A stretch of DNA of 63,966 nt, counting the filler, from Pelomyxa schiedti (lineage: Eukaryota; Protista; Evosea): NCBI GenBank assembly GCA_020536535.1. It is 11 parts of 11 records of this genome, joined end to end, with 100 filler letters (N's around TTAATTAATTAA, not from the genome) between each part and the next. Parts side by side here need not be neighbours in the genome. Positions count along the whole stretch, not along the records: positions 11,427 to 41,723 come from JAHLWZ010000042.1; 10 more parts are not named here. One strand, given 5' to 3'. Each line of letters starts with the position of its first letter. Positions within the stretch are counted from its first letter, which is position 1. The translations under genes were made by a program, and so were the position numbers. This document shows positions 14,642 through 39,784 of this stretch, one piece after another. The notes beneath the pieces are model-generated. The model searched no databases and was not told where the DNA came from. It was given only the letters and a program-made list of their open reading frames with translations.

Positions 14642-17044
14642 CTAGACAAAGTAGACTTCGAGTTCAGCTCCTTCGTGGAGGACACGGAGGAGGTCGGCGT
14701 CGTTTGTGAGTTTGTTGGTGCGGTTGGCCGCGGTGGTTATTTCCCACACGTCGGTGTTTGGTGGGTGTGGTAGGAACTGAGTGAGCCGGCTGACTAGGGT
14801 CGGGTAGGTAAAATCACTCAGGGGCATGTGGAGTTTGTAGAACCAGAAGGTTCCGCGGCTACGGGCCTTGAATCCTGTGTGTGAGGTGAGGTGGGTGTCG
14901 GGAATTACTAGAAGTGGGTGTGGGAGATACTCAGGTAGTCTCTTTCACTGGGGACTGTGTCTAGGTCTAGGTAGCTTTTGTACTTGGAAGGAATTTGTGG
15001 TTCGCCGTACATAGCCCTTTGGTTGTCGGCGATTTTGATGCACAACCTGCAGCTCGAATGAACCTGATGGGGAATGAATATCAACACCCGAAATCAAAAG
15101 TCGGATTATACATTGGCAATGTCAACTAAAGCCTTGAATTCCTTGGAGTAACCTTTCACTTTCCAAGACAAGTACTCCTGATACATTGTATCATTCTTAT
15201 CAAGCATCTTCAAGTATGCAGCAAGGCTTTGAGGAGATCTAGTCTTTCAAGTGAGAAAGGCAGGGAAGCACTAGCTCGGAGATATTTATATAGACTGTAT
15301 TTTTAGGATGGGCACACGAAATCATGCACAGAAATGATTGAGTGTGGAGATGGCCCAAATCGGTGAACATCCTCAATTCCCATGTGAACTGAAATGGAGA
15401 GGGAGGAATGGGGAAAAGGAGATATTATTGGAAAAATCTGTTGTAAAATGGTTATACTTGGAACAGCTCCCGCAACAAATGTCGCGAAGAGCTTTTCAGT
15501 GACGTAGTCTTTGGTGTTGGAGTTCTCAAATGCAATGGCAAACTTATAGTTTCGGGTCAAGGCGATTTTTTCATCGAAGTAGTTACCAGTGTGCAGGGTG
15601 GAAGGAAACTCCGCGTTCTTTAGGCAAGATCCAAATGAATCAACCGTCACTCCAGCATCCATAAGTGCAGATAGATACTGAAGTCGATTGTTCATTGCAT
15701 GGCAATTGGAAATGAGTGCAACTGCCATTGATTTTGCAGTCTGTAATTATTGATAAGTAGGTGGATTTCTGACGGGAGAGTTGGACCTTGGGGACTACTG
15801 GTGACATGAAGTCGTACTCTGCCCAACTAAAATATGGTGCTGGTACATCAGAGTCTAGGTCATAGGTAGCAACAATATCAAAATTTCTCCTGGCTGATTC
15901 TACTATGCCACATCAGCGGCAGAGTATGTAACACAGAGATAACACACATTCGCATATTGGGTATTGAACAGCACTCTCCATTGAGAAGATAATCTTCTGA
16001 ACATGATCACAACTTTCAGGTGAGTGAGCAGGATTGGAACCCGGTAAACGAGTCATGGTACCATCAATGTACCCAAATACTTTGGCTTCAGAAACAATGA
16101 TGCAGGGGATATCGCATGCGGACTAAGTTGGAAATACTTTGGTAAAGTGGTAAAATCACAAAAGATTGCTTACCATGTTAATTTGTTGCTGACTTATGCC
16201 CTTCTGGAACACCACAGGTTGTTTGTAGTAATTTCGTCCTGCACTGTGGGGGCAAGAAAGTGAAGTCTTAGCAGGTTTTTCTTCAGGAGTTTCTTCAGGA
16301 GGTTGTTGCTCTTTTTCTTCTTCTGTGTCAGGTTGCTCCTCTTTTGCAGGAGGCTCTTGCTTAGAACTTGGAGGTGTCACTTGTGGGTGCTCCTGGGTTT
16401 TTACTTGTTCATCCATCTGCTTTCTAATTTCTTCATCAATGTCGTCTTTAACATTGTCCTCAGCCTGAAGATTACTTGACTCCACCTTTCCGACATCCTT
16501 GTTCTCATTTCGCACTGGAGTCTTGTCGGGCACATTGACGACAGGTGCAACCCGGATGTCAGGTTTCTTCACAGGCCTTTAAAGAAGAATTAATACAGCA
16601 CAGGAAGAAGATAGCGGGTGAAAAAAAAAAGGCGAGGAAAGCAACTCACGTGGTGTCCTTTGGAGACCTTATAGCCATAGTGAACACCAGAAACATAACC
16701 GAGCACAACACGATGAGTCCCAGAAACAGCGTTTTCCACGTGACCCTGGGCTCGCCGCCGTGAGTTTTGTGCGACCCCGCGGCGCCCTTGCCGGATCTGC
16801 GACCTCCGCCGTGGCTGCCGCCCGCCGCCGCACCCGCCGCCCCCGCCCGCTTCTTTTTTCTTGTGGATCTGCGCCCCGACGAGTAGTAGTCGGCCCGATG
16901 GGCGCTGGCCGCCGCCGCAGCAGATCCGCTAGGAATTGTGGCCGCGGTCTCGTCCACCAGGCCGGACTCGAGGTCGTCGTCGGCGAGTCCGCTGCCGCTG
17001 CCGCTGCCGTCCTCGTCACTCCCGTGGCGCGCCGCGTGGCTCAT
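14642..17044 (-). CDS. GT10 alpha-1,3-fucosyltransferase, type II membrane protein
   Basis: N-terminal TM segment (TLFLGLIVLCSVMFLVFTMAI), stem, then ALISNC, VDSFGSCL, YKFAIAFENSNTKDYVTEKLF, GAVP. C-terminus ends ELEVYFV-stop. Confidence 0.88.
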
Positions 17045-17210: not shown

Positions 17211-17276
17211 TCAACTATGTTCGCTCTCACTCTCACTCTCGCTCCCACTCCGGCTGCGGCTTCGGCTTCTGCTTCT

Positions 17277-17314
<38 letters not shown>

Positions 17315-20300
17315 TTCGGCTACGGCTTCGGCTTCTGCTTCTGCTCCGGCTCCGGCTCCGGCTTCGGCTACGGCTTCGGCTTCGGCTTCGGCTCCTGTCG
17401 CTGTCGCTGCTGCTACCGCGCTCTCTCTCGTGGTCGTGCTCACTGGCAACAGACCCTGACACGTTCCACTGATACAGAGAGCATCCCACATGCACATAGA
17501 ACGGCTCCTCACACTCTTCACAGCCGTAGTAAGATTCAGTGAGGGGTTTGTGGCAGCGATTGCATTTCTTGTGCCGTGTCAGGTCACTGTCTTTTGGCTC
17601 TGTGAGTGTCATACTGTACCCGTGCATCGCCAGCTTCAACGAATCGGGCAGCTTGTGCGCCCCTTTTAGTTCCGAAGGCAAGAAATCATGTGCAGAGCGG
17701 CCATGAATCTTTAACTGTCTCTCGGAATGATATACCCAGCCAGTTGGTCTGTATAGACCGTGAAAATTGGGGGCCTCAGCATACACCAGCTGAAGTGGTA
17801 TTTCAAGCCCATGAAACATACTCCAGGAAAATATTTTATTGGGTGGAGCCTGAACCTGCCGGTATTTCCGGTACTGCTTGATGCGAACTTGGTATGCACA
17901 TTTTTGGCAGTGATATTCTGGAGTTGAAGTCTTTCGGTCTAACAACTGGAGTGGGTGCTCATGATATTGGTACAAAATCCATTCAGGCAATTCACGGCGA
18001 CTACCGGTGCACATCGGATGAAAGTCTTGATTATCAATATGGCAGTGGTAAGCCCATCCTGATCCATTGAGTGAACATTTTGCACAAACAAAGACAGGGG
18101 TTTCCTGCAACTCCAGGAGGTGTTCATGTAACTCAAACATAACCCACCTGACGCATTCAACAGACCAGGGAAATTCAAGTAGGGGGAAATCATTGATGAG
18201 ACTAGAAACTGAGTGCTTGGAAACAATCTCCCCTTGTTGACTCAGGATCACTAATGTGGGTTCGGCTGCATATGTGCCATGTTAGGGAGGAAAGGAAACA
18301 ACTAAAAGAAGAATACCTGCAGTGACATCAAACATGTCTATGAGAGTCTCCTCCAGTTCCCTTTCCTCAAAGGGAAGACGCAACCAGGCATAAGTTTCTC
18401 GTCCCTTGGTGTTGAGTACTTTTGTAGAGTGATTACAGGAAATTTCAATCAGGAGAAAGTTGCTCTTTTGTTCTCCTGTGAGAGCACCATATTTTTTTGT
18501 AAGCTCTGCAGTGCACAGTTTGGTCCTTGGATTTGAATAGTTTGAAAAGAACAGTCCGAAGTACTTATAACTTTGTTTAATGTAGACAACCTTTGAAAGC
18601 AGTATGCTGAGTTGTGCCAGAACCATATTTGCGTCCAGTTTCCTGTCGTATTTGCTTGCCCCAATCACAGCCCGGGATTTCAACAGAAGTTTTTTTTCCA
18701 CACCCAGACCTTTGACTTTTTGTACATTTGCCTGAGTAGCAACAAGAGGTTGGGTGGTGTGACCAAATCGCTGCACTAAGGTGACCACAATTCCACCATC
18801 AGCCTTTCTTTCCACGCGGAGGAAGTGAGTTTCCCTGCCGGCAACAACTACAAGTAAATTGTCCCCAGCAGCATTCAATGAGAATATGCGTCCGGCAAAT
18901 GGACCAAATGTGAGCAGGGACTTCATTGGGGGTCTCAAAGACCACAGTAAAATTGTAGACTGCGTTGTGGCAACAGCAGCAATTTCAGTAGCCAACAACA
19001 GGCACCAGGGTCCACCATTCACACTGGTACCCAGCTTTTGAGATTGTACACCCCCTTGCTCAGGTGCTTCCAGCAACAAAGCGTCAACATCATCGTTGTC
19101 AAGGCCACTGGAGGACCTCTTTTCCGCCAGGTAAATGCTCATATTGACATCGTTAATGTAGAAAGTGTCACCGATCACGTGAAACTGAATTCTTTCCTCA
19201 CTACTAGGAACACGCTCATGTATTACTTGCAAGTCCCCCCTAAGAAAGTCAAAAGCTCCACCAGTATATTTGAAATATTCAGAGACCTGTTCTGAGAAAC
19301 AGAAAGCTGGTGGGAAAGCGAGAGGGGTAAATGGCCCAACAGTGAGTTTGAGGAGGTCAAGGTCAATCATTACCAGTATGTCACTATCAGTATTCCAGAT
19401 AAACACTGTTCTCCAGGTCGGTGACGCGACCACTGTGCTCCAATCCACACTTTTCAGTGGAAGATCTATGGGGTTCTCTGGGATCAACTTGGTTGGTTGC
19501 GCATAAGCATTTAAAACACAAAATAGGTTTTGAGGGTCCTCGCGATCGACGATTTTGTCAATCAAAATGCCTGGGAGACCTGCAGCGCCAGTCGAAGGGT
19601 TTTCTGCTGCTTTCGTCAGGGCAACGCCCAAAGGAGTAGTAATGGAATCTTCCCTACTGGGGAAGAAGGACCATGCCTTGCATTCATAGCCAGAGGCTGT
19701 GTTACTTTTGGCCATGTCCCCACTCTCCAAGTCCCACACAAACACAGTGGTGGGATCACATCCAGCCAAAAACCTCCCATTAGAAGACAAGCAGCAACGC
19801 TTTTTGAACTTGTTTGCTTTGGATTGAAAATCCTTTGGGAGTGGCAATCTTTTGAGGCCATCAGTTGACCACATCTCGCACACCAATATGGACTTAGCTA
19901 TTTTTTTAACTGTCCGTTCTCCTGCTGGTTCACAACCCTCAGATGTATCACTTCTGGCAGCAGAACTTGTATCCAACTCGCATTCATCTGGCATGATCTG
20001 TCTCTTTGTAGCAATCAACACTTTAGATTTGCAAGTTGATATACAGCGGCAAGGCCAACTCTCAGTGGCCTGCATGCTCCCAGAAACTTTGACTTCATAA
20101 ACCCGTGAGTCTCCCAGGTACCCAATGGTATCTTCCCCTGTGAAGAAGCTCTGCTGTGCTACGTAACAGTGAATACTTTGTGACTGGACGTGCATCAGCT
20201 GTGTACCAGCCAGCAGCCAAGTGCTTTTTGGAGAGAATGAGAGGGCAGTAATGTCACTTGGGTAGTTGACTTGGTTCTCAAAGAGCACACTCAAAGATGA

Positions 20301-23300
20301 CAAGTCTTTGTTAAAAAGGTCCCAAACAGTAAGCCTGCCTGATTGCTGAGAGAACCCAGCCAATTTATCCCTTGCTGGGGATATTGCAAACAAGGAAATA
20401 TCAGGCCCAAGGTTGGTTGCAGGGTGTGGTGAGCAAATCAGGTTCCCTGTAGTTTCTGCTGGGGACATCTCAAAGAAGGTGGATGTCCGAGACACAGTTC
20501 CCAACAGAGATGACTTGATGAAGAAATGACCAAGACACCCAATAATGGAAAACGATGGTTCAAGGACTGTTCTTGTTTCTCGTGATGAAGAAGGCTTGGG
20601 GGAAGGAAGAGAAAAAATATCTGTTTCACAAACCTCGGTTCCTTCCACCTCCTTTGATATTGCAAGAATAGTGGCATCCCCAGAGAAACATATATTTTTA
20701 ATACTACAGACTGGTGTTCCTCCAGTGGGTTTTGGGAATCTAAGATTGAGAGTGGTATTTGTGGGGATGTCCAAAACCAGAAGAGGAATATCTCCACTGA
20801 CAACCAGGCATATCTTTTCTCCATTTGGAGAGAATTTAGATTGGCTGCCCTGTACTTTAGGACCAATTTCAAGTAGTTCTTGGTCCTCTGAAGTGAGATA
20901 ACATAATAATGGGGAGGCTTTGTTGTGTGGGCAAGCACACAACCGCTTTCCATCTACAGTCACATCAACACAAGCAAGCCTCACACCAAAATCAAAGACA
21001 ACCCTCTCATTAAAGGTCACGCCTGTCATGTTAGCATATGACAGGTCGGCTCCGCATATCCACACCTGTGGCATTTTGCAGTCACTGAGGTCAGCCTTCC
21101 CCAGGTTGGCGGCTCCAAATATGCCACCCGTGAGGTCAGCACCGTTGATGTGAATGTACCGCAAATCAGCATTTGAGAAGTTGTGTTTGCCCTTGACCAG
21201 TAGCATCATTGCTGTGGTGGCAGCCCTGTCAGCTCTATGTGATTCAGTCGCGCCTGCCGCGTCACGGCTTGTCCTCTTGGAGTTCTCAATGAGGAGAAGG
21301 AGTGCCTTTCGTAGACTGAATGTGTCTTTATTATTGCCATGTTGTGCTTGAACAGATTCATCCCTAAACATCATCTCCAGCAAAAAGCTTACAACATCAG
21401 GAACTTTGACAAGAGTGGACTGATTAAGAACAAGATCACAGGGAGATTTCACAACCTTTGTTCTTTGTTCATTCTCTTTGGCAGCTTGCATTTTCCTCAG
21501 CCGTCGTCGAAGGTGAATCACAACACCCAGACTTGGCCTGAAGTTGCTTTTGGTTATTGTGCTTTCAATCTCTTCTTTTTCTTCATCTAGTCCAAGTAGT
21601 TTAGTGACAAGTGCACAATGGAGGACTGTAGCGGAAGCCTCTTTCGCGCTCTGCCTCTGTGATTCCATGATATGCAGAATATCTTCAGTTACTTTGTCCT
21701 TGTCAATCATGCAGTGCTGATGGCAGTGAGCCTCCTGGATTTTTGTAATGAGGTCAGCAAGATGCCTCCTTCCATTTGTGACGGAGAGTATTTTATCCAG
21801 TAGCTCCCTAAGTCTCTCAAAATTTTTCTCTCCTAACCAAGAAACAGAGGTATGTGTCAGTGCCTCACTGACAATTTCGCACTTAGGATCCAAGTCCAGA
21901 GCACACTTATTGCACAGGTTGAAGTTGCATATGTAACAATGCCAACCATCATCTTTAGGATTCCCACAGCAACCTACCTTTCGACAGGAATCACACTGCC
22001 AGTGATACAAACGTGCCTTCTTCCAGTCAAGGTGAAATGGGGCAAGGTGTTCCAGCGTGTGCTTATGGACAACAACATTGGCAAGTTCCAGAGGAGGAAG
22101 GCGCATTGCAAGGAGTTCCCTCTTGTGCTCCTGGAAGACCTTCCACATTTCTGCAAAGTCACTTTCATTATCAGCGATAAGTGGACCAATCATGGTTTTG
22201 AAAAACTTAGTGGGTTCATCATCTTTTCCACTTGACAAACGACTGGGCTGATATTTGGCACTTATTTCCTCAATAATTGCACATACAAATTGATGTGTAG
22301 GGCTATGATAGCGCCTCTGTGTGAGCTTAATTGTCTCCCTGCACTTCACTTTGGGGAAGTTTGAAAACGGCATGCTGACACAGAGCTGTACCTCCTTGTA
22401 AATCTTGTAGGCAATGAAATATTCCTGAAGGGACTTGTGCAAGAACATGAAAGTGTTGCCACCCTTTCTCTGGATTGGGCAGCCAGAGAGCACCAGCTGC
22501 GTGCTCCGATTCGTTGGGCTGAAGAACCTCTCAAGTGGGTTGGTTTGGTCAATCACCTCGACACCCTGGCTGTTTGTGGTCCAAACAGGACTGTACTGGA
22601 CCGCTGTCACCCCCTTGCCAAACATGAAGATGGAAAGATTCTCAGAGAAGGTTCTGAAGTCCTCAACGATGTCCCCACCAACCTGGAAGTTGAACTTGAC
22701 TTGCTCCGCATCGTCGGTAATGTGCTGTGCTGTGGTGCATTGGGCCATCCTCTCAGGTGTGATTTTGGACTTTTGCCTCTGGAACCACTGTTCCACAAAC
22801 CTGTCATAAAGCTCAAGCCTCGTCAGTTTGCTGTCATCAAACCTCCTCTTCGTTTTATCCGGCTCCAGCCGGTCAACAAGTGTTGGGAGAATCTCCATGA
22901 ACATCTTTAATATCAGTGGGGTCCTCACTAGATCCTCTACCCCTTTCAGAAGTTCCTTGTGCTGATAGAACAGTTCTGCACTCCATTCACCTCCAAACTG
23001 AGCATACTTCTTGACATATGCCTTTATCTTCTGCCGAGTGAAGGGCTCAATGTACCAACACAGCACCTCTGGAGCTGCTTCCGCCTCAGCGATACCTCCC
23101 CATTCAGCTGATGGCTGTGTCTGCACCCCCTTTTTCATTGACTTCCCAATTTTTCCCTGAGCACCAGGGAGGCAACAGAAGTTTTGGAAGTAATCTGACC
23201 CGATTTTCTCAGGCCTGCTGGATACCAGCACCTGTGCATACCTCCATTCCTCGAGTTTGTTTGCCCGACAGATGTTGACACCAACCTCGAGGGTGACTTC

Positions 23301-26105
23301 GTCATATCCATCAAGAATGAACAGGACCCGCTTGCTTGCCTTGATTTCATCAATGTTGTTCTGGGAGAACCCAAGCCCAACGAAAGTCTTCTCGAAAATG
23401 TTTTTTCCTGGATTCTTGATGGTTGCGAGTGAGATGAACATTGGGATCACCTTGCAACTCTCATAGGACTCCCACAGAACCTTCTCCAAGAAGTGCCCAA
23501 ACGTGGACTTTCCTGTTCCACCAGACCCAACAAGCACCAGAGTCTTGGTTGAAGGGAAAGGCACCGCTGAAGTGGAGGACAGTGCGGTTGTTGAGGAGGA
23601 TGTGTGGGAGCTGCCACATTGTGCAGCTGTCATATTGAGTTCAAGATTCAAGAATTTCCGGAGCAGAATCTCCTTCAACGGCTGTGCCACTTTGTCAAGG
23701 GTACTCTCCCGGCAATCAGGTTCAACATATGTCTTGAACAGAGTTTCAAGCTGTGGATCTTCCAATGTACGATTCCTGAGGTCCATAACTTGATCATCAA
23801 CCGAGTCATTGAGGGTTGTCAAAATCTCGGCCTTGGATTTGATGAATAGCTCGGCAGTGCTCAAAGTCTCTTCCACTGGTGTGGTCTGTGGCTTTGTCAG
23901 TGGGAGCAACATCTTGAACTGTAAAATCGGGTGGATGTTGGCAATATCTCCAGGTGCCAAGGGGCCAGCAGGGACTGGATTTTTTCGCATGTAAATGAGG
24001 AAGTTAGTTTTAAAAGGATTCAGGAGCCCAATGGCCTCAGCAGAGAAATTTGCCTTGCTCAAATTCAGCTTGTCATCAAAGCAAGAGATGACATCGGCTG
24101 TCGGTTGTTCCTTCTGAGTCTGCAGAGGGGGAAGAGTTGAAATGTCAATGAAATCTGGCGCTCCAGAGGGCCTGGGCACCACATACAACCAGAGCTCCTG
24201 ATTGGAGATGTAAGCCAGAGTTGGTCGGACCATTTCGGGAGTGGCTCTGTCCAACTTACGTCTCTGTGGGAAACTGGCAGTTCCAAAGTTGATCCTGTGT
24301 TTGAGGTCTCTGTTTCTCTGGCTTTTTGCCTCTTCTCCCTGAATGAACTTCATCACTTCACCCAAAATTTGCCATGCAGTGTTTCCAATTGGAGCCGGCA
24401 TCGTGGAATATTCTCGCAGTTTTCTGATGACCACCATCATCAGCCCGACTTCCGAGTTGAAGAAATTCATCAGTGCACTGTCACGGTGATCTTCTCCAAT
24501 CAGAATTCCCTTGAGCTGAGCCAGTGCCCATTTTTTCATCTCAATATTCTCAGGTGGCTCTGATCTGATCACGTTGTCAAGGAGATTGACATATCCCAGG
24601 CTGAAATCATGCTCTCCTTCCAACACTGCATTGAGTTGGCCTTTGAGCTCAACAGCTTTCCTTTTTCTCCTCTCTGCGACATTGGAAACTCCCTCCTTTG
24701 GATCCAGCAAATCAAGTTTTTCGGCTGTGGCACCAGAGGTGGCTTTGGAATGAGAAGCTGCTTTCTCTTCCTCTGCTGCCAAGTCGGCGTCCTTGCTCAA
24801 AGAATCAGCGTGACGGAGACCGAATTTCCTGGACTCAGAGTATATCTGTTGAATGGTGTCCTTCAGTCTCTCCTGTTCCTCCGGTTCCAACGCTTTCATC
24901 TCCTTCGCGCCGACAGTGAGCTGCCAGAGCATCAAGTCAATGAAAAACAGCAAGTCCATCCACAATTCATTGTGAATGTCAGCGAAGCACTCCTTGAGCT
25001 CGGAGAAGTAGTTGAATACCTCTCGTGTATCGTATTGCATGGCAATATTGGCCATCGCACCGACTGCCATGTATGCATGCCCGAGTCGAACAACAACTTC
25101 CTTCAGAGGATAGCCGTTGTCTTGAATTCGTTGTACATTCTGCTTGGCAACTTCTGCCTCGGCGGCGACGTAACACTCGAGGCTCTTGTAGTTGGCGTAT
25201 CTGTCTTTCAGAGCCTGAAGTGTTCCAAGTGACTTCTTCTTGATCTGTTCACTAAGGCCCTTGACACCTGATGCCCACATCGCACGGAGAAACTTATTGA
25301 CAACCCTGAGTATCTGGAACACCCTCTCTGCACTTTGCTGCTGTGCCTGCAAAATCTCGAGCTTCCCAATGAGCATCCGATAAGTCGAAACCAGGTCTTC
25401 AACTGGAATGTGACGGGAAGAGCACTGGAACAGAACCTCAGCCAGGCCCTCAATCATAGGCACATCAAAGAACGTGTTCTGGTCGATTGTGTTGACAAGT
25501 CCCGACACGAGCATCTGAACCACTTCGCTGTCGTCAACCCTTGCAAGCTGCACGATTTCATCGATCAGGGCAGGAGTCTTGCTCGGCGTTGACATGAAGT
25601 TGTCGATCATCTTGATTGCCAGGCTCTGAAGAACCCGTTGACCGGCTTTGTCCGTGAAAATGAGAGGGCACCTGAAGTGGCGGTCTGCATCGGCGTCGTC
25701 CAGAGTGGCTTTTGAGCCTTGAATTGCCACAGAAGTCGACTCTGGAAGGTACTCTGAGCAGAACGCCTTTGTGGAATCTGCGATTCTTTGGAGCAGTCTT
25801 CTTCCCTGGGGCGCCCTTTCTGCAGTTGCAACAGGTGATGCACCTGTTGTCAACTTGTGCTGAGGAGTCATGAAAGTCTGGAGCTTCTCCAATCTGTCCC
25901 TCACGAGCGCTTCCTTGTCGTAGGAGAGCATCGCCACGAGTTGAGCTCCAGTGTTTACGTTTTGAACTCGCTTTGCGCGAGACTCCTGAAGCGCAACTGG
26001 AACTGCCGTGCTGGGCATGGCCTGTGCGCTCTCATCATTGTGGGATGATGTGGATTCACTGGTGTGATGATTACGATGACTCGAGGCGTCGGCTGTGGGC
26101 ATCAT
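17211..26105 (-). CDS. Giant NLR-like STAND protein (about 2950 aa): ARM-like, NACHT NTPase, DC1-like insert, pentapeptide repeats, degenerate WD40/propeller, DC1 zinc fingers, RS tail
   Basis: Walker A GSGGTGKST (about 23502-23528), Walker B ILDGYDE (about 23300-23320), VSSRPE, TPLILK, FLHKSLQEYF, ADLRYIHINGADLTGGIFGAANLGKADLSD. A predicted 51-nt intron at 18266-18316 joins ORF 18282-26183 in frame to ORF 17211-18251. First ATG is 26105. Confidence 0.88.
17246..17400 (-). repeat. Hexanucleotide repeat encoding an (RS)n tract
   Basis: Minus-strand AGC-(CGA/CGG/CGT/AGA) units. The variation is synonymous only in the Ser-Arg frame. Confidence 0.85.
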
Positions 26106-26303
26106 CGTTTTGCTTCTCTTTGGTTGTTCTTTGAAACGACAACTCTGTGATCGGACCAACTTTTTCTCACTCTTTCGTAACAAGTTTCTCGAAAAAACAA
26201 TCTCGGGATTTCGCTTTAGTGGGATGTAAACACAACAAATGGAATACGTAAGTTGTAGGTGGGAACGTTTGGGAGAGAGCTGACCATGAGTGATATTGAG
26301 TCA

Positions 26304-26502: not shown

Positions 26503-27037
26503 TTAATTGGTTGTGACTGTGAGCAGACCATAAATCTCGAATCCAGCTATCAAGAGGTAGTTGCAGTTACTTGAGTCGAGACCAGTCATCACCACACGAA
26601 ACACACTGAACGACGAGGTTGGAGTGGGTGGAGCAGCATCCCACGACCCAACTCCATGTGATCCAACTATTGTCTTGTCATTTGAATGCCTCGTGATGGT
26701 TGTCCATGTTGTGCCGTCGTTTGATCCCCTCAGCTCCCAGTTCCGAATGTAGTCACTGTCGTTGCCGTCGTGCCTGATTGAGTACTTTGACGGCCTCACT
26801 GACCCGCCACATGGTCTCAGGTCCACCTGCCACCAACTGTTCGCCACGTTGGTGGTGTTGTTGCCGCCGTTGTGGTCACGTTCGAGTGCGTTCTGTGGTG
26901 CCCCTTCGTTGGAACAGGACCACGAGGCGATGACGAGGCCCGAGTTGTGGGGGTTGACATAATTGGGAGTGTGGTTGCCGGGGTTGTGCCTTGGATCGGG
27001 AGTGGTTCCCAACCACCACATGACACCTTGATGGTCC
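26503..27037 (-). CDS. C-terminal discoidin/F5-8C-like (HECTD1-type galactose-binding fold) exon of a TRIM-like paralog; 5' part in gap
   Basis: GVMWWLGT...NSWWQVDL...PSKYSIRH...IRNWELRGSNDG..WTTITRH...FRVVMTG...IAGFEIYG. About 90% aa identity to 28855-29373. Confidence 0.8.
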
Positions 27038-27137
27038 NNNNNNNNNNNNNNNNNNNNNNNNNNNNNNNNNNNNNNNNNNNNNNNNNNNNNNNNNNNNNNN
27101 NNNNNNNNNNNNNNNNNNNNNNNNNNNNNNNNNNNNN

Positions 27138-28727
27138 GGTCCCAAGCCACCACATGATTCCTTGTTGGTCCCAGTTGCTGCTGAATGTGAACTCACGTGT
27201 GACAACTGGCGGTCAATTGTTAGTTAGGGCTGAAATAACCAAAATAAAAATACAGAGTGACACTGACTCGGGAGGACAAAAGAAAAACATAGTACACAGA
27301 CACACTGACATACTGATTGGAGTCGAGAGAGTAGCGAATGGGGAGCTCCTTCCGTGGATTCCGTTCGATTCTGCCCTCACGCTCACCATGTATGTGGTTC
27401 CCATTGACAGGCCTCCAACTGTGATCCTGGGGTCACTCCCGCAATGGAGCTCCTGTTGCTCTTGTTGTTGTTTCCTGGACACAAAAACAGTGTATCCTGT
27501 CAGGATGGCTGCCTTTGTTGGTGGAGGATCCCATGAGAGAATGAGGGACGTTGCTGTTGATTGGCACAAGCGTGGCTGCCCCGGTCTCCCAATCGCTTCC
27601 TCTATTTTGTGGTTTGTTTTTATGTTTCATGGCGGCGAGTCGGCGATACCCACCAGGAGGGAGAATGACACCCAGTGATGATATTGCTTTAAGGCATGCG
27701 GTTTTGTCAAGAATTGTGAAAACTCCATCATTTTCGCACGGCCGGAGCTTCTCTGAGTTGTACAGAGCACCCTCTACTATCTTTGTTTTGATTTGTGAGT
27801 TGTGGGGTTTTTGTTGAAGAGTAAACAAACCAACCTGCAGTGTTTCTGAGGACTGTTTTCGAGCTCTCATCACAGATTCGTTCGAGGAAGAGTTCATGGC
27901 AGCCAATGAATATGAGCAAGCACCCTCAAGACGTTCGGAGATTGTTGTCAACACGGATTTCTGTTGATTCAGTCTTTCAACTGGAGTTATAATGATTTGT
28001 TGGCACAATCATCTTTAGGTTATCTTTCACCTGTTTTTGCACAAATATTTGAAGACTGTTGGTTCAGTAAGTCAATCCTGTTTCTCAAGAGATTCTGCAA
28101 CTCTGCTCCAACCTTGTTCACTTCCGCCTGAAATGGGGCACGTTTCTGATAGTTGTGGGTAACAAAGAAATTGAGACTTAAAGATTTTGAGAAAGTGTGC
28201 CATTCAACCTGTTCAACAGATGCAATGAGGTTCTCCAGCTGTTGCACTGCCACATCAACCTTGCTCTTTTGGTCGAGGCACCTCTTGGACAAAGCTGCAA
28301 TCTGGTCTGTAGATGCCACAGAGTCGGAACCTAGGGGCCTGTTGGTCTCCATAGTTCCTTTCCACACTGTGATACTGCCACCTGTGTAACGGCCGAGCAC
28401 TTGGCGCACTTCACTTCAACTGTGTCTGGAAGCTGCAGACGAAAACTCACCTGGGTAACACAGAGTGACCAAAAAAAAAAAACATCGAACGTAGAACGCA
28501 CAGCTGCTTCATCACTTCCCTGTTTCAACAGTGCCAAAGAATACTGCTTTGCCACGCAACTTACAACACATTCGCGACAAATCCGGTCTCCACACTTCAT
28601 TGAGTCAGTCCGTGAAGTGAAAAAACAGATGCAAAAAAACGAAGGGAACAGGCAAACGGACCACAGGAGGATCCTTGAAATCACAGAGACAACATGTTGT
28701 ACAGCACAGCTCCAACGTACCCGACAT
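27138..28727 (-). pseudogene. TRIM-like paralog lacking B-boxes (RING, coiled coil, FN3, start of discoidin domain), apparent frameshift
   Basis: MSGTLELCCTTC..CGDRICREC..VKCAKC. The reading frame shifts near 28350 relative to the paralog (ETNR lies in another frame). Coiled coil and FN3 (LSWDPP..GYTV..YMVSVRAES) follow. Confidence 0.6.
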
Positions 28728-28854
28728 ACGGTTTTTTTTTGGGAAGGCAGGAAATTTCGCCACAGCAGATTAGTAATCAAAAAAGTTGGTTTTGGGCATG
28801 AAGGCGGACCAACCTCGGACGGAACTGGCACAACACACATAACTTTTTTGTTCA

Positions 28855-31646
28855 TTAATTGGTTGTGACTGTGAGCAAACCATAAATCTCGAATCCGGCT
28901 ATCAAGAGGTTGTTGCTTTTACTTGAGTCGAGACCAGTCATCACCACACGAAACACACTGAACGACGAGGTTGGAGTGGGTGGAGCAGCATCCCACGACC
29001 CAACTCCGAATTTTGCATCGATTGTCTGGTCATTTGCATGCCTCGTGATGGTTGTCCATGTTGTGCCATCGTTTGATCCCCTCAGCTCCCAGTTCCGAAT
29101 GTAGTCAGTGCCGTTGCTGTCGTGCCTGATTGAGTACTTTGACGGCCTCACTGACCCGCCACATGGTCTCAGGTCCACCTGCCACCAACTGTTCGCCTCA
29201 TTGGTGGTGTAGTTGCCGCCGTTGTGGTCACGTTCGAGTGCGTTCTGTGGTGCCCCACAGTTGGTACTGGACCACGAGGCGATGACGAGGCCGGAGCTGT
29301 GGGGGTTGACATAATTGGGAGTGTGGTTGCCGGGGTTGTGCCTTGGATCGGGAGTGGTTCCCAACCACCACATGACACCTTGATGGTCCCAGTTGCTGCT
29401 GAACGTGAACTCGAGCCTGGTTTCTGTGGGCCAATTTTAGTTTGATGCACAATGCCACGATGAAGAAAGCCATCTCATTGCAAAAAAAAAAAAAAAAAAA
29501 GAAGTTGATGAGCGATGAATAACAAACAACAGTCACACATAACACATACAACACACTCACCGTTTGTGGTTGAGAGCGCCTTGAAGGGGGAGTTCCTTCC
29601 ATGGATCCCATTTGACTCGGCCCTCACACTCACCATGTATGTGGTTCCCTTCGTCAGCCCACCAACTGTGATCCTGGGGTCACTCCCGCATTGGTGTTGT
29701 TGTGGTTCTTCTTCTTGTTGGTTGTTGTTGTTGCGTTGTTCTTCCTGCTGCTGTTGCCTGGACACAAACACCGTGTATCCTGTCACTCTGTTTCTTGTTG
29801 CTTTTGTTGGTGGTGGTGGAGGAGGAGGGTCCCATGAGAGAGTGAGGGATGTTGGGCTCGCTTGGCATATCTTAGGTTGCCCTGGTGCACCGATTGCTTC
29901 TTCTGTCGGCATTATGTCAGTGTTTGTTTGGTGGAATGCAGTCTTTCTTTGATCGCGTGGTGAGTGAACACACACCAGGAGGGAGAATGACACCCAGTGA
30001 TGATATTGCTTCACGGCATGCTGTTTTGTCAAGGATTGAGAAAATTTCGTCACGTTCACACGGCTCGAGGTTCTCTGAATTGGATGACACACGCTCCACT
30101 GTCTTTGTGTTTTGCAGGGTTGTGGTTTTTTTGTTTCATTCGAGTGTAAAAGGCAACTTACCTGCAGTGTTTCTGAGGAATGTTTTTGGGCACTGATCAC
30201 ATAAACGTTGGAAGAAGAGTTCAATGCAGACAACGAACAGGAGGAAGCACCCTCAAGATGCTCAGAAATTGTTGTCAACATGGATTTCTGACGATTCAGT
30301 CTTTCAACTGGACATTGTTGTGTGTTTTATTTTATTTTATTTTGTTTTGTTTTGTTAGTTCGGAGCACCCACCACCCTCTCTTTCAGTTTCAAACCTGTT
30401 TTTTCGCAAATATTCGAAGACTGTTGGTTCAGGAAGTCAATCCTGTTTCTCAAGAGATCCTGCAACTCTGCTCCAACCTTGTTCACTTCAGCTTGAAATG
30501 CTGTGTGTTTCTGACCAATGAAAATGGGTGGGTAATTAAATGGTTTGTGTTTACGGTTTGTGTGGAATATAAATAAATGTTCAGGCTTCCAAAATGGCTT
30601 CAACCTGTGTGACAGATGCGATTACGTTCTCCAACTGTCGCACTGCCGCATCGACCTTGTTCTTTTGGTTCCGGCATCTCTTGGACAAGTTTTGCAAGTC
30701 TGATTTGCTGGCAGCAATTTGGTCTGAAAGTTCAAGCAGTTTATGTCCCTGTATCACAACCAGTGGTGAGAGGTTTAAACAGCCAAAGAAGTTTCACCTG
30801 ATGTGAAGTGACCGCGCAGACGGAGCACATTAAGGTTGTGCAGTTCACACAGTACAACTCGATTTCTTTCTTGGGGTGTTTGGGACAATTGCCTGTTTTG
30901 AGATTATGATGAGCAGCTCAAAACCTTTTGAAGGGGTGTGCCTACTGAGCACTTCCGGAATTGCTTGCGTCAAAGGAAGCTTTGGATGAGTTGCAAAAAT
31001 CGGTCTTCTGTGAGCTCCAACCCAACATGTGTCACACAGAGACCCACAGACAGAACAGTGAGCAGTAGCCGGCTGCCCACAGTCCACACACACCACTGAA
31101 CCCCCTGTTTTATGTGTTAGGTGTGGTGGATACACTTCGCAATTTCGGAAAAAAACCAGTGGCATGTTCCCTCTGATGGAGAATTTCAACAAGGTGCCGG
31201 TTGGTCTCGAGAGCCTTGGCGCCTCGTGACACCGACGCTGGTGTCACCATTGAGCACTTGACACACTTCACTTCAACTGTGTCTGGAGGCTGCTGCATAC
31301 AGAACAAAAAAAAAAAAAAAAAAAGAGAGGGAATTGATGGTACTCAGTAAAAAATAAATGCCCGAAAGAGGAGTGTTTTTCGTGTTGTCACTCACCAAAA
31401 CAGATTTGTCATCACCCAATTTCGACAGGGCGAGAGCACATTGAGTTGCCATGCAACTGACAACGCACCCACGACACATGCTGTCCCCGCACTATTTATT
31501 GGTCGTTGGTCAAACAAACCCCGGACGTGGGAGAAGAAAAAAGCAAGAAACACCTTTAAAACCACGGGATCAACGAAAACGTTGAGACAGTAAGGGCAGC
31601 ACAGTCCCGTCGACTCACTCAACGACGTCGCCGTAGAACCTGCCAT
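28855..31646 (-). CDS. TRIM/RBCC-like E3 ligase: RING, B-box1, B-box2, coiled coil, FN3, discoidin/F5-8C-like domain; complete, multi-exon
   Basis: RING CPYC..CGDSMCRGC..CVKC. B-box1 CVDC..AHCSVC..LCDTCWVGAH..H. B-box2 CPKH..LYCVNC..MCSVC...H|GH. Then coiled coil, FN3 and discoidin exon. Splice sites are consistent in phase where checked. Confidence 0.85.
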
Positions 31647-33164: not shown

Positions 33165-36100
33165 ATGGCTCACGATGGTACGAGGAGGGCGGTGTTACAG
33201 GGCGAGGAAGGGCAACCCATAATGGAGACCTGTGCCGCCGGCGCCCCTCCGTCGACGCCGCCGCACCACACGCCGCAACAGCAAGGGACGACACAGGACA
33301 GCTCCGCCGACTACGACGACAACGACGGCGGGACCATGGACCGCGGGGAACAAGGCGGCTCCGACGAGGACAGCGACTGCGTGATCGTCGGCGTCGCGGT
33401 TCCCCTGCCCGCCCCGGGCGACGGCGACGCCGACGAAGCAGACGATGAGGCGGACGGCGCCGCGCCAACCGCAGGCGGCGGCATAAGAAGATCGAGGGGG
33501 CGCAGGAGGCCCGGGGCACATGTTAAAAGGGAGCCGCGGGAGGAGGACGTGGAGCGGGAGAACCAGGGCAGCGGGGAGGAAGAGGAAGCCGAAGAAAGCG
33601 AGGTGGCGGCGGGGGAGGGGGAGGCAGAAGCAGAGGGAGAGGGAGAGGGGGGGAAGGAGCCCAGCGAGGAGGAACAGGGGGACGAGCAGGGAATACAGCG
33701 GGACGAGGATGACGGTACTGGCGGTGGTGACCAAGCGGAGACAGAGGTGATCGAGGTGGACGACGACGACGCCGGTGTCGGTGGTGGTGATAATGGCGAC
33801 GAGGAGGGAGCGAATGGCTGTGATGAGGATGAGGATGGGGATGGGGATGGGGATGACGGAGTGGCGAAAATCGATTGTGGGAATGGAGAGGATGATGATA
33901 CCACGGGAACGGGAACGAGAGGAAGGGGTGACGATGACGGAGAGAACGATGACTATGAAGATCAAAGGAAACACCGGACCGAAAAGAGGAGAAGAACCCC
34001 TGAGAAGCCGTCGAATGAAGGTTCTGGCCCTTGCTCTACATCCACTACTGCGTCCACTTGCATAAGGAACCAGAAAAATAAACCGGTGGAAGAGGAATCT
34101 GGCATTACAAAACTTTTGGCACTTTTTGATCAAGAGAGGGAGAAAAATGAGATGAAATTACTGCTAAAGGAAGTTGTCAAATTAAAGCAGAAGCTCAAAA
34201 TGAAGAAATTGGAAGAGAAAAAGAAAGTTTGTTCATGTGGTCATGCTACAACATGTGCATTAGAATCACAGTCCGTTCATAATGAGACATCCACTTCCCA
34301 CAAAAAGCCAAACCGCACAGCTTTCACACTTGAAGAAGATCTTTGCATTCTCAAGTTCGTTGAAGACAACCCAAACATGGGGACTCGAGGAAATGCAATG
34401 TGGAGACAGCTTGCAACTCAAGTTTATTTTTTATCTTTTGTCCTTTTTCCCTACTCCCACTGATATTGTATTTTGTCTTGTCGATTGTCATATGACTTGT
34501 TTTGTGGTTCCATCTTTTTTTTTTTTGTTCAGTCTGCCTCAGGTTACCACACATACATGGCAGAGCTTGCGTAGTCGCTATTTGCACATTAAGGACAAAA
34601 CAGAAGCGGATTTGAGGAAAGATCATACCCCAATTGCAAAGCTCCCCAACTGTTTAAATATGAGACCAATAGAGTCATTCCTTCATGATCCTCAGAATTC
34701 ATCTATACAAGATAGGAACTCATTTTTCCCAACAAATCAACATTTTCTGCATACCCCTGCTATCGACGTCGATGATTCGTGTTTTCCCAATGTACCTTCG
34801 GCCCCACCCTCACCTACCACAGCAACATCTTCAGTGCGAACTCAAACTCCAGTACGTGCTCACCTTTTCCCAGGTCAATCTCAAATGTCACATCCCTATC
34901 CACAGTTGCCTGTGAGCCAACAGCATCCACTATACCACATTGCACAGTGTGACCGACGCACTGCCCCAACGCCAGTACTTCAGCCCCAAATGCAATCAAC
35001 CAAACCTCAAAATATGGATGCACCACAACTTCATTTATCACGTCCCCCAGAAATACCACTATCACAGCAGCAGGTGGCAGTGGACCCTCAGCCTCCACCA
35101 GTACCTCAATTACAACCTCCACCGCCACTCCATCCACCATCACAGGTGCAGTCGCCGCCGTACCCACGGCCTGCATCACAACAGCAGTCCCCGATACAAG
35201 GGTCACCACAACCTCAGCCACCCCCAATGCAACAACAACAAGCACAGTTGCTGTCACGACCTCCACAGTCCCAACCATACTTACAACCCGTACCACAATT
35301 ACAGCAACCACCTCAACTGCCACGGTTGTTGCAACCCTCATCACAGCCGCAACAAACGCCACAGACTGAACCACTGCCACAAATAGAGCGACAACACAAG
35401 ACACATATATCACAACAACTTCCGCAACCCCGAACACATCTAGAACAACAATCACGGCCACCGCAACCAGCAGAGCCACAACAAATTGATTTACCCCTCA
35501 CCTCTCCAGAGACAGTTCAATACATTCCTTCTAATCCACACCTACCGTCACTACTACAAGAGCCTGTTGCACAACAGCCAGAGCCTATTTCTTCAACAAC
35601 ATCATGTACAAATACCTACTCCCAGACTGAAACTTCAAATTTACCCAAATCTGTACATAAGGGACGAACACAGCAAAACCAAATTACTCCCTTGAAAAGC
35701 AAAGAAATTCCGCAACCAAAGCCACCAAAGCTCACAAATCCCAACAAATCCTCTGCAACCAAAAGGCCGGCTACACAAACGACAGCTGCAGCAGTAGGTA
35801 TTGTCACATCCCCTGGCAAAGTCAAGTCAGAGCAGGCTACTACACACAGCCGAAGTTCGGGTTTTACATCCAATGCCCTGAGCCAAGTCATCAACGGCAC
35901 GGACAAGGATTTAAAAGAAGTTGCAGGGGCACTTCTGGCAACCGGTTCAGTGCATGGAGCAATAACATTACTGAATGGAGAAGGTTTCCTTTCACTCCCC
36001 TACCTACCACTTGAAACTAACCGGCCCCAACAGACCCTGGTGTAAAAGTATGGAAATCTTCCGAGAACGTATGTTCTAATTTTCTTTCCCCCTTCCGTTT

Positions 36101-37923: not shown

Positions 37924-39784
37924 TTACAGCCTTAGAGGATAGGGAAGACTGAAGTGGAATGCAAGTTCTATGATGAATTGAAGTGTAGGTAGTGGTATGA
38001 TGCTGAATACACCACCCTTCTTCCATGAGAGGAACAACGGCTTTAGTTGCCTGAAAGTAGGGAACCTTCCCTTGATGAAGAAGACAGTCTGGGCCTTTTC
38101 ACAATCCACAACATAAACATCACCTCTCGGCGTCATCCATAGACCCATTGGGGTTACAAGGGATGGGTGGGTGAAAAACTCGGTTGCTTTGGTGGCTGTT
38201 GTGTTTCAGTGAGGGGTTTGTGTGTCTTGAATTGGGATTTGTACCTCTGTTGAAAGACATAACAACGGAGTACTTTGGGTCGGTGAGGAAAAACATGTTT
38301 CCGGAGCTATCTACTTTGATTCCTGTGGGCAACATTGGATGGGAGTTGCATTCGAAGCGTGTTATGGTAGAGACCATTCCTGGAAAGATAGTTAGCTTAG
38401 TGAAAGTTCTTTATTGGTAAACCGTCTTTAATTCTCCTTATGCTTGATGAAATAGAATCGGCAACATAAATCGCCCCCGTCGAGTCAACGCAAACGCCGC
38501 GAGGAAGATTGAACTGAGCACTGGAGCACTCGCCATCCTGGGAGCCAGCCTTGCTGCTGCCAGCAATGGTTGTCACAGTGCCTTTTAGGAAGCTAAATCA
38601 GTAACAAAATGGAAACTGCCTCACAAGAGAGATACCATCCAGAGTAACTCTTCGTATTCTGTGATTTTCAGAATCAGACACTACAAGTGTCCTAGTCGAC
38701 TTGTCAAATACAATTCCCCACGGGCCTCTGAATAATGCCTTGGGGCCTCTCCCATCAGCATAGCCACCCGAAGGTGAACCAGCAAGTACAGTCACATTCC
38801 CTTTTTAAATATCCTCAGAAACAAAAAAACCCCAGCGAAGCACAAATCAAAATAGACACATGAACACCAACTCAGCAACCAAGTATTTGACTTGACACAT
38901 AACCTACAAGGCACACACACTGCCCACACACCTTCCATAGACACTCTCCTTACACGGGACGATCCCTGCTCCGTCACATAAACAATCCCCTCAGGGTCCA
39001 CAGCCAAAGCAATGGGGTTCCAGAAGGACGCGTCGTGCGGGCCGCCGTCCGACGTCCCCTCCATGGCCCCGACCGCGGCGCCGACGCCGCCCCACCGCGT
39101 CGCGGTCATCTCGCCCCCGCGCATGGACGCCCGCATGGCCTCGGTCAGCATCACCGGGCCCATCCACAGCACCGCGTGCATCGCCCAGTCGACCACCAGC
39201 ACGCGGCCGGGCTGCCCCTGGTCCGCGCCTCCGCCGCCGCCGCCGCCGCCGCCGGGGCCGCGCGGCTCGTCCAGGCACAGGTCGTAGGGCTGCACCAGGC
39301 ACGTGGGGCTGTAGTACCTGTGGAACACGTGGGGCGCCGCCGACATGACGTAGTCGACCTGGCGCCCGCCGCGCCGCATGGGCTCCCTGTCGGCGCCGTC
39401 GTCGTCGTCGTCGATCTCCATGCTGGACCCCGAGTGGTCCGCCGCGGCGCCGCCCCACGTAGTCACCACCGGCGCCGTGGGTGTTATTGTGGCGGCGACG
39501 GAAGTACTAGCAGTTGTGGTGGTGGTTGCTGATGCTGCTGCTGTTGATGGAGGTGGTGTGGATGCTGCCGGGGCCGAGGGGGAGGCCAGGGTCTCGATGA
39601 CGTGGACGGAGCCGTCGTCGGCCGTCACGGTCACGGTGGCTGTCGGGGGCGGGGACGGCGTCCGCTTGCGTGGGGACGTCTTGCTGGCCGGGGGCGGCGA
39701 CGGCGTGCGGTTGCGCGGCGACGTCTTGCCCGACGACGAGGTCGGCTTGGACGAGAACATGAACGCAGCGAGCCTGCCCCTCAT
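37924..39784 (-). CDS. NHL-repeat beta-propeller protein
   Basis: DGGPHDASFWNPIALAVDPEGIVYVTEQGSSRVRRV, LAGSPSGGYADGRGPKALFRGPWGIVFD, DSENHRIRRV, AQFNLPRGVCVD. Confidence 0.82.

Follow-up and report, generated by a model that had tools for sequence, protein, structure and literature searches.

A giant NACHT gene of the amoeba Pelomyxa schiedti with probable bacterial ancestry and a nucleoredoxin-like tail

How does an amoeba come to carry a gene whose domain order is familiar from Mortierellomycota fungi and their endobacteria? The question is raised by locus C42 of Pelomyxa schiedti (assembly GCA_020536535.1), which lies on the minus strand at positions 17211–26105 of a 63,966-nucleotide stretch of joined genome parts (hereafter the window), within a 30.3-kb piece at 11427–41723. 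NACHT-PPR-WD40 NOD-like receptors (NLRs) of Mortierellomycota have been described as coming from Mycoavidus (Ciach et al. 2024, PMC11291939), with which they share a long helical N-terminal domain, 'NLR_Helical' (Wojciechowski et al. 2022, PMC9815663). A preliminary description of C42 pointed to the same ARM-like/NACHT/pentapeptide/WD40 order. Judged by its sequence, C42 is a giant nuclear NTPase of the STAND class (signal transduction ATPases with numerous domains), of the NACHT type, and belongs in the broad sense to an ARM_5-NACHT-pentapeptide-WD40 family. We put at roughly 65% the probability that a STAND sensor passed from a bacterium to the amoeba, independently of the fungal exchange, and was afterwards duplicated and fused to host domains.

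The gene begins as a minus-strand open frame of 2,633 codons (18282..26183), which is followed by a 346-codon frame (17211..18251). Its first ATG is at 26105 and its stop codon at 17211–17213, so the span first proposed corresponds to a single gene. From the list of open reading frames (ORFs), their translations and a reading of splice sites we derive two exons, 26105..18317 and 18265..17211 (17214 without the stop), separated by a GT..AG intron of 51 nt (18316..18266) that lies inside a thioredoxin-like domain. Removal of the intron joins ...FDVTA to AEPTLVILSQQGEIV..., restoring the end of the thioredoxin-like fold, and the spliced coding sequence of 8,844 nt is in frame, has one stop (the terminal one) and encodes 2,947 amino acids (aa). 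In a contig from public single-cell RNA-seq, position 18265 is fused to 18317 with exactly 51 nt missing, the ends of the missing segment reading CT..AC on the plus strand. The gene is therefore transcribed and spliced. Three more RNA contigs are colinear with the genome (17469–18089, 20759–20987 and 21154–21304), and contigs from three other runs of the same study, whose kind is not on record and which hold 77%–97% of the gene's words, retain the intron. One intron in 8.8 kb compares with a mean of 7.43 introns per gene in the published single-cell assembly of P. schiedti (PMC8887013), while the GC content of the gene (47.6%) is that of its contig (47.5%). Between window positions 17834 and 22550, scattered mismatches separate the assembly from other runs of the same sample (one run has 25 in 3.5 kb, or ~0.7%), which suggests allelic or between-cell polymorphism of the NLR gene.

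Pfam scans and two AlphaFold2 models resolve the product, from the N-terminus, into an ARM_5 alpha-solenoid, NACHT, a DC1-like zinc finger, a pentapeptide beta-helix, two putative, degenerate WD40-type propellers, a thioredoxin (Trx)-like domain without CxxC, three DC1 fingers and an arginine-serine (RS) tail; all coordinates that follow are on the minus strand. Residues 1–150 are predicted to be disordered, having low pLDDT (the per-residue confidence of the model). The ARM_5 match (PF23948; 24978..25652, aa 152–376; 55.4 bits, E 6e-15, cut-off 27) forms the core of a predicted all-alpha solenoid that spans ~aa 150–602 (ending at nt 24300) and is followed in the model by a small alpha/beta unit (~aa 605–655) and by helices to ~aa 830; the model of aa 1–830 has a pLDDT of 76.5 and a predicted TM score (pTM) of 0.69. 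The N-terminal helical strings picked out in the preliminary description fall at aa 180–245, in the predicted solenoid, and the likeness to the Mortierella-type ARM-like domain is borne out by the same PF23948 match. 'NLR_Helical' is probably the domain that Pfam models as ARM_5, whose core a local jackhmmer search recovered in 111 family members. Foldseek matches of the N-terminal model in the PDB were generic ARM/HEAT solenoids only (importin-13, SF3B1 and CAND1, with E above 1e-3), with no death, enzymatic or pore-forming fold among them, and a fold search of the ESM Atlas gave TM scores all below 0.25, which are not meaningful.

The NACHT NTPase and its winged helix (22356..23582, aa 842–1250) score 24.7 bits in the whole-protein Pfam scan, just under the cut-off of 26.7, and 29.2 bits in a six-frame scan of the genome. 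Walker A (GSGGTGKST; 23502–23528, aa 860–868) and Walker B (FILDGYDE; 23298–23321, aa 929–936) are followed by an SSRPE sensor-1 region (23208–23225), TPLILK (aa 1062–1067), LTRLELYDRFVEQWF (aa 1094–1108) and the winged-helix His motif FLHKSLQEYF (22416–22445, aa 1221–1230). Across the family (alignment A1) the G, K, D, E, R and H motif positions are invariant or nearly so, and the motifs for nucleotide binding and hydrolysis are intact. A profile of this alignment detects NLRC4, NLRP9 and NLRP1 in the PDB (E ~1e-4), the only solved structures that can be reached by sequence. Gaps in BLAST colinearity mark an insertion of ~280 aa at ~aa 1250–1550, which contains a DC1-like zinc finger (21900..22067, aa 1347–1402; C1_2 E 0.03, positions 3–48 of 48). 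The pentapeptide-repeat beta-helix (20991..21197, aa 1637–1705; PF00805, 26.1 bits, cut-off 20.2) lies downstream of the NOD module, with the insertion intervening in this subfamily; it is modelled with one strand per five residues (pLDDT 80–88), and the pentapeptide strings AATTAMMLLVKG and FSNADLRYIHINGADL stand at aa 1628–1658. All the motifs quoted in the preliminary description are thus present in the minus-strand translation.

For the WD40 part the earlier assignment fares better in predicted fold than in sequence. Pfam matches to WD40 reach 16–17 bits, below the cut-off of 27, in the region 18666..20978 (~aa 1710–2480), which is modelled mostly as beta strands with a mean pLDDT of 57.7 (55–83 in the first propeller and better over the first 370 residues, with the second half poorly modelled). 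Foldseek matches this model to tandem double WD40 propellers (Pwp2, Utp proteins, Aip1 and a Nostoc propeller; E 2e-17 to 1e-13, probability 1.0 at best), consistent with two sequence-degenerate WD40-type propellers. The C-terminal part begins with a Thioredoxin_8 (Trx_8)-like domain without a redox site, detected by Pfam and split by the intron (18189..18566, aa 2514–2622). Exon 2 then encodes three C1_2/DC1 zinc fingers in three stretches (17457..18188, the best-scoring at 17481–17624; PF03107, E 5e-11) and, as read from the translation and Tandem Repeats Finder, an RS dipeptide tail specified by a (CGGCTT)x24 microsatellite (17251..17393). This tail may be a recent, length-variable addition, because alignments with the paralogues end upstream of it, at aa 2862. 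The intron, the internal zinc finger and the Trx-like/DC1/RS tail all lie inside the gene as first delimited, though none was mentioned then. NCBIfam matches to Qnr, PipB and HetL fall far below their cut-offs and reflect a shared pentapeptide repeat rather than functional homology, and the PRP38_assoc and MSCRAMM/Ser-rich matches of exon 2 come from the low complexity of the RS tail.

In a word-indexed search, the NACHT region returned four P. schiedti proteins (41%–64% identity) and then Glomeribacter, Mycoavidus, Linnemannia and Mortierella (24%–32%). When 1.84 billion representatives were searched exhaustively with HMMER, 1,471 matched at E <= 1e-3; the best of these outside Pelomyxa were P0023, a protein in a bacterial neighbourhood, Modicella reniformis, Mycoavidus cysteinexigens, several Mortierella and Linnemannia proteins, and P0028. 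The NACHT domain finds family members with phmmer E-values of 1e-46 to 1e-67. PF23948 scores 188–265 bits on proteins of Linnemannia, Mortierella and Glomeribacter, and in BLAST the ARM_5, NACHT and linker-plus-pentapeptide segments are homologous to, and colinear with, those of bacterial and fungal members, so the comparison with the Mortierellaceae/Mycoavidus family was well founded. No other amoebozoan homologue was found in the protein databases searched: the best relatives outside Pelomyxa are bacterial, Mycoavidus and Mortierellaceae sequences, and not a vertically inherited amoebozoan NACHT family. The language-model clusters closest to the protein are, without exception, bacterial NACHT families. 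When prokaryotes were scanned at one genome per species, the matches listed were mostly metagenome-assembled genomes (MAGs) of Mycoavidus; also among them were Coxiellaceae, Legionellales, other Gammaproteobacteria, Myxococcota, Chloroflexota, Acidobacteriota, Planctomycetota, Actinomycetota and one archaeon. Copy numbers, taken from a count in five genomes, can be very high: at least 41 family copies in Mycoavidus BRE-AD073 (G005; 2.6 Mb), at least 26 in the gammaproteobacterial MAG OZ257148 (G003; 3.0 Mb), of which ~16 stand in one tandem array (C2:1142000-1218000), and at least nine in a second gammaproteobacterial MAG of 2.2 Mb.

The closest NACHT domains outside Pelomyxa, at 28%–30% identity (E 1e-40 to 1e-52), belong to the metagenomic or environmental proteins P0028 (SRR33307855), P0005 (ERZ25039465 contig_16207) and P0050 (ERZ27256791). 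P0028 (2,934 aa) is nearly equal in length to the Pelomyxa NLR and has ARM_5 and pentapeptide repeats in the same order. The origin of such sequences was judged from their neighbouring genes, which was feasible for P0005, P0023 and P0028. P0005 (2,232 aa), on a contig of 2.4 Mb, has as neighbours an IS66 transposase, Abi_2, a pair of helix-turn-helix and M78 genes and a HigBA-like pair. P0028 adjoins genes for a lytic transglycosylase (SLT) and for an RNase R that is 69% identical to a protein from a Gammaproteobacteria MAG and whose best match among cultured organisms is Coxiella burnetii (59%). Unlike the Pelomyxa gene, then, P0005 and P0028 sit among bacterial genes, and P0028, P0005 and P0050 are without introns, Trx, DC1 or RS. 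P0023 (L027; GCA_016307145.1, JADMIO010814478.1) has two NACHT modules in one protein; beside it lie a further two members of the family and the holin and lysozyme genes of a prophage lysis cassette.

Trees were built with FastTree (222 rows) and with IQ-TREE (90 rows; LG+C20+F+G4 with posterior mean site frequencies), together with a quick IQ-TREE run. FastTree and IQ-TREE agree that the five sampled Pelomyxa paralogues are monophyletic (100/100) and sister to (P0028,(P0005,P0050)), a union supported at 100/99. The next neighbour of the Pelomyxa clade, weakly supported, includes a sequence from a Coxiellaceae MAG. Mortierellaceae are nested among Mycoavidus and Glomeribacter sequences in a separate clade, which excludes Pelomyxa in all three trees (100 in FastTree; SH-aLRT branch support 99 in the quick IQ-TREE). 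The approximately unbiased (AU) test rejects a grouping of Pelomyxa with Mortierellaceae (delta lnL 212, p 2e-65) as well as one with all the Mortierellaceae and endobacteria together (delta lnL 20, p 0.008). The family assignment made in the preliminary description thus stands, while a place inside the Mortierellaceae/Mycoavidus clade does not: these trees put the Pelomyxa genes outside that narrow clade. Because their sister group consists of three other sequences, at least two of them bacterial, the exchange that the phylogeny points to would be separate from that between Mycoavidus and Mortierellaceae, and the horizontal transfer first raised as a possibility gains support.

The likeness to the NLRs of Mortierellomycota, Mycoavidus and Glomeribacter nevertheless extends over homologous modules in the same order (ARM_5 solenoid, NACHT, short linker, pentapeptide repeats and, by predicted fold, WD40 propellers), to a multi-copy habit and to a distribution across a eukaryote and bacteria. 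The Pelomyxa protein is larger, at 2,947 aa against ~1,600–1,900, and has in addition a 400-aa helical extension, the internal DC1-like finger, degenerate WD40 repeats and a tail of dead Trx, three DC1 and RS that occurs in no sampled fungal or bacterial member.

At least seven loci of P. schiedti itself belong to the ARM_5/NACHT family (C42, C381+, C381-, C663, C424, C1031 and C231), and there are fragments besides. Four of these, C42, C381+, C381- and C663, are mutually 44%–58% identical over most of their length and ~71%–72% identical in the NACHT region, whereas identity among these close copies in the sensor and tail is ~44%–53%. The oldest paralogues are ~31%–35% identical over most of their length. 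The Trx-DC1 tail is carried only by the four close copies; the ~280-aa insertion is likewise confined to them, being missing from the bacterial and fungal relatives and from paralogues P0002–P0004. GenBank already lists several paralogues, under the names 'NB-ARC domain protein' or 'hypothetical protein', and proteins P0001–P0004 map at 100% identity to other contigs of the assembly. The name 'NB-ARC domain protein' is imprecise, because Pfam finds NACHT and not NB-ARC. C381- is split into two overlapping frames (932 and 1,891 aa; G000:C381:51200-51203) near the equivalent of aa ~903 by either a frameshift or an assembly error, and as a result the GenBank model P0001 (Pelo_4669) is without ARM_5 and the Walker A part of NACHT. 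Outside the family, P. schiedti has at least seven further NACHT loci (two on C682, and C951, C231:3276-3743, C820, C185 and C387), all of them uninterrupted frames of 1,000–1,700 aa. The NACHT of C185 groups with a different bacterial/metagenomic clade, a placement that hints at more than one NACHT acquisition in Pelomyxa.

The source of the tail can be sought in the same genome, where the best Thioredoxin_8 plus C1_2 matches are two native nucleoredoxin-like genes, C802 and C68, each with three Trx_8 repeats followed by one DC1. The NLR tail aligns as one piece to the last Trx_8 and the DC1 of C802 (29.6% identity over 186 aa, E 3e-15). The native genes keep HWCGPC at the CxxC site, whereas in four of four NLR paralogues this site lies in a conserved GLFFSNYSNPR, SNYSNPR replacing HWCGPC. 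The full-length DC1 module is found in the genome only in these four paralogues, with a short match of 52 aa on C2264. The only intron detected in C42 lies within this module, and C381+ and C663 have a break at the same position. The tail thus shares the Trx fold and DC1 with C802 and C68, and differs from them in the loss of CxxC to SNPR, the triplication of DC1 and the fusion to a STAND ATPase; it is of host origin, a nucleoredoxin-derived module and not a redox enzyme.

The history that we favour would run as follows. The Pelomyxa clade would descend from one bacterial gene, its donor possibly an uncultured gammaproteobacterium. That gene would have arrived without introns and then been duplicated in Pelomyxa, and the subfamily of C42, C381+, C381- and C663 would have acquired the DC1-like finger of the insertion and, at its C-terminus, a copy of the closing part of a host nucleoredoxin-like gene (the last Trx_8 with the DC1). 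This copy would have carried in the only intron of the gene; its CxxC site would have disappeared and its DC1 been multiplied. We infer this order of acquisition, duplication and fusion from the near-intronless gene, its host-like base composition and the 31%–35% identity of the oldest paralogues, and the transfer is not a recent one. The direction and the donor of the transfer are likewise inferred. The present symbionts of P. schiedti (Syntrophus, Vesiculincola and Methanoregula) were considered as donors and rejected, not being of the nearest relatives' group.

Several points weigh against this history. The tree is unrooted and its backbone is weak (25%–67% just above the clade of Pelomyxa and its three relatives); the sister group is three sequences, all from metagenomic or environmental read assemblies, of which P0050 has no informative neighbouring genes; and the groups compared in the AU test were chosen with the tree already in view. 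The lack of further amoebozoan homologues was judged from protein databases with sparse coverage of Archamoebae, P. schiedti being the sole eukaryotic genome searched directly. RNA contigs cover ~1.2 kb of the 5.9 kb examinable, so exon 1 may hold further in-frame introns. The N-terminal fold, as modelled, is a generic solenoid without recognisable effector chemistry. Finally, the 9–41 copies found in host-associated bacteria with small genomes would also fit bacterial uptake of a eukaryotic gene.

That last point leads to the reverse direction, in which the family is eukaryotic, arising in amoebae or fungi and captured by intracellular or host-associated bacteria, perhaps as effectors, so that the Pelomyxa copy is native. 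The domains ARM, WD40 and NACHT count among the typical 'eukaryote-like' ones, genomes of 2–3 Mb show the largest expansions (the Mycoavidus and two gammaproteobacterial genomes counted above), Coxiellaceae and Legionellales MAGs are among the carriers, and a Legionellales symbiont of an anaerobic amoeba has been reported with predicted NACHT/WD40 effectors. We nevertheless regard this direction as improbable: the gene is almost free of introns in a genome with 7.4 per gene, the eukaryotic members are polyphyletic with each group next to bacteria, the family extends to Myxococcota, Chloroflexota, Acidobacteriota, Planctomycetota, Actinomycetota and an archaeon, no other amoebozoan homologue turned up in the protein databases searched, and the closest language-model clusters are all of bacterial NACHT. 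An ancient eukaryotic NLR retained in Pelomyxa and Mortierellaceae and lost nearly everywhere else would account for the common domain order of an amoebozoan and a fungal lineage and for the deep divergence of the Pelomyxa paralogues (~31%–35% identity). It is strongly disfavoured, with very little probability left to it, by the AU rejection of Pelomyxa plus Mortierellaceae and by the nesting of Mortierellaceae within endobacterial sequences; it would also require very many losses, and the low intron count is unlike that of an old eukaryotic gene.

A more mundane explanation is that bacterial or fungal DNA was co-amplified with the amoeba's, or misassembled, as might be suspected when an assembly derives from amplified single cells of a prokaryote-filled amoeba and when a long uninterrupted ORF is bacterial in look. 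The spliced transcript, from which a GT..AG intron has been removed, leads us to reject it. The flanking genes on the contig are multi-exon and eukaryotic (F5/8 type C plus fn3, GT10 fucosyltransferase, Myb-like and NHL-like), the gene recurs on contigs of 53–154 kb in three further runs from the same sample, there are at least seven paralogous loci, and one part of the gene can be traced to a native nucleoredoxin-like gene; contamination is effectively refuted. A last alternative accepts the bacterial origin and assigns the protein another job, namely housekeeping in the nucleus or linked to redox, as a regulated scaffold or ATPase, with the RS tail, DC1 fingers and nucleoredoxin-like fold targeting RNA-processing or redox partners. 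The RS dipeptides resemble SR-protein domains, a nucleoredoxin-like gene is the source of the Trx-DC1 module, the N-terminal domain shows neither a death nor an enzymatic fold, and PADLOC defence models matched neither the NLR protein nor P0005 nor P0028. Set against this, the RS tail is a microsatellite product not recovered in the paralogue alignments, the thioredoxin site is dead in four of four paralogues, and multiple copies with fast-diverging sensor regions (~44%–53% against 71%–72% in NACHT) are the usual signature of recognition receptors. We consider such a housekeeping role unlikely.

What the acquired protein may do can be approached through better-known systems. With animal NLRs (NLRC4, NLRP1, NLRP9) and the bacterial NACHT (bNACHT) proteins it shares the central NACHT, Walker A and B, the winged-helix His and the effector-NOD-sensor layout. 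It differs from them in having no LRR (leucine-rich repeat), CARD, PYD or SNaCT, in a sensor built of pentapeptide repeats and predicted WD40 propellers, and in an N-terminus that is a solenoid; unlike plant and animal NLRs it has no LRR sensor and no NB-ARC (no Pfam match to either at E <= 0.1 in the protein), and unlike curated bacterial antiphage bNACHT systems it matches no PADLOC model. Bacterial NACHT proteins sense phage (Kibby et al., bioRxiv 10.1101/2022.07.19.500537). If its domains work as those of solved NLRs and bacterial NACHT proteins do, a ligand would be bound by the pentapeptide and double-propeller region, and possibly also by the Trx/DC1 tail; binding would relieve auto-inhibition and free NACHT for nucleotide exchange and oligomerisation; and the clustered N-terminal ARM-like solenoids would then serve as a platform for downstream partners. 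By the same analogy the likely role would be the sensing of intracellular non-self or the surveillance of symbionts. A part in sensing or policing intracellular microbes is plausible because P. schiedti houses three intracellular prokaryotes, the symbionts named above, in an obligate consortium. More speculatively, the C42/C381/C663 subfamily could be an amoebozoan counterpart of the 'integrated-decoy' NLRs of plants, a receptor of bacterial origin that would use a catalytically dead fragment of a host nucleoredoxin (Trx-DC1, later multiplied) as bait for a pathogen or symbiont factor acting on nucleoredoxin; we hold this idea tentatively and think it doubtful.

The surroundings of C42 on the 30.3-kb piece deserve brief mention. 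The neighbours at 26503–30281 (minus strand; two F5/8 type C domains plus fn3) and 15303–15728 (minus strand; a GT10 fucosyltransferase fragment) are fragmented into numerous short ORFs, as is typical of the intron-rich P. schiedti genome and in sharp contrast to the 7.8-kb single exon of the NLR gene. A 330-aa ORF at 38792–39784 (minus strand) with a weak NHL-repeat match is unlike the rest of the piece in composition (GC 0.67 and third-position GC3 0.81, against 0.475 for the contig). At 33165–36045 (plus strand), two overlapping long ORFs in a strongly purine-skewed stretch (GC skew +0.34, then -0.39), with only weak Myb_Rap1 matches, may represent low-complexity coding sequence.

Repeated transfers of NACHT genes from prokaryotes to eukaryotes, often from intracellular bacteria, have been reported by Kibby et al., so such movement is already established; the Pelomyxa gene differs from all sampled members of its family by its size, its insertion and its tail of dead nucleoredoxin, DC1 and RS. 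In a literature search we found no paper treating NACHT proteins in Pelomyxa or Mastigamoeba. To the documented bacteria-to-eukaryote cases, which concern animals and fungi, the gene would add one from a protist, an archamoeba, marked with unusual clarity by a spliced transcript, an almost complete lack of introns, bacterial sequences as sister group and the subsequent joining of a recognisable piece of a host gene. It also changes the reading of the fungal case, since the 'Mortierella/Mycoavidus' NLR family is a single branch within a broader bacterial family, one with huge expansions in certain small bacterial genomes. If the decoy interpretation were true, the integrated-domain strategy would have evolved by convergence beyond the plants, in a protist whose cells are permanently shared with prokaryotes.

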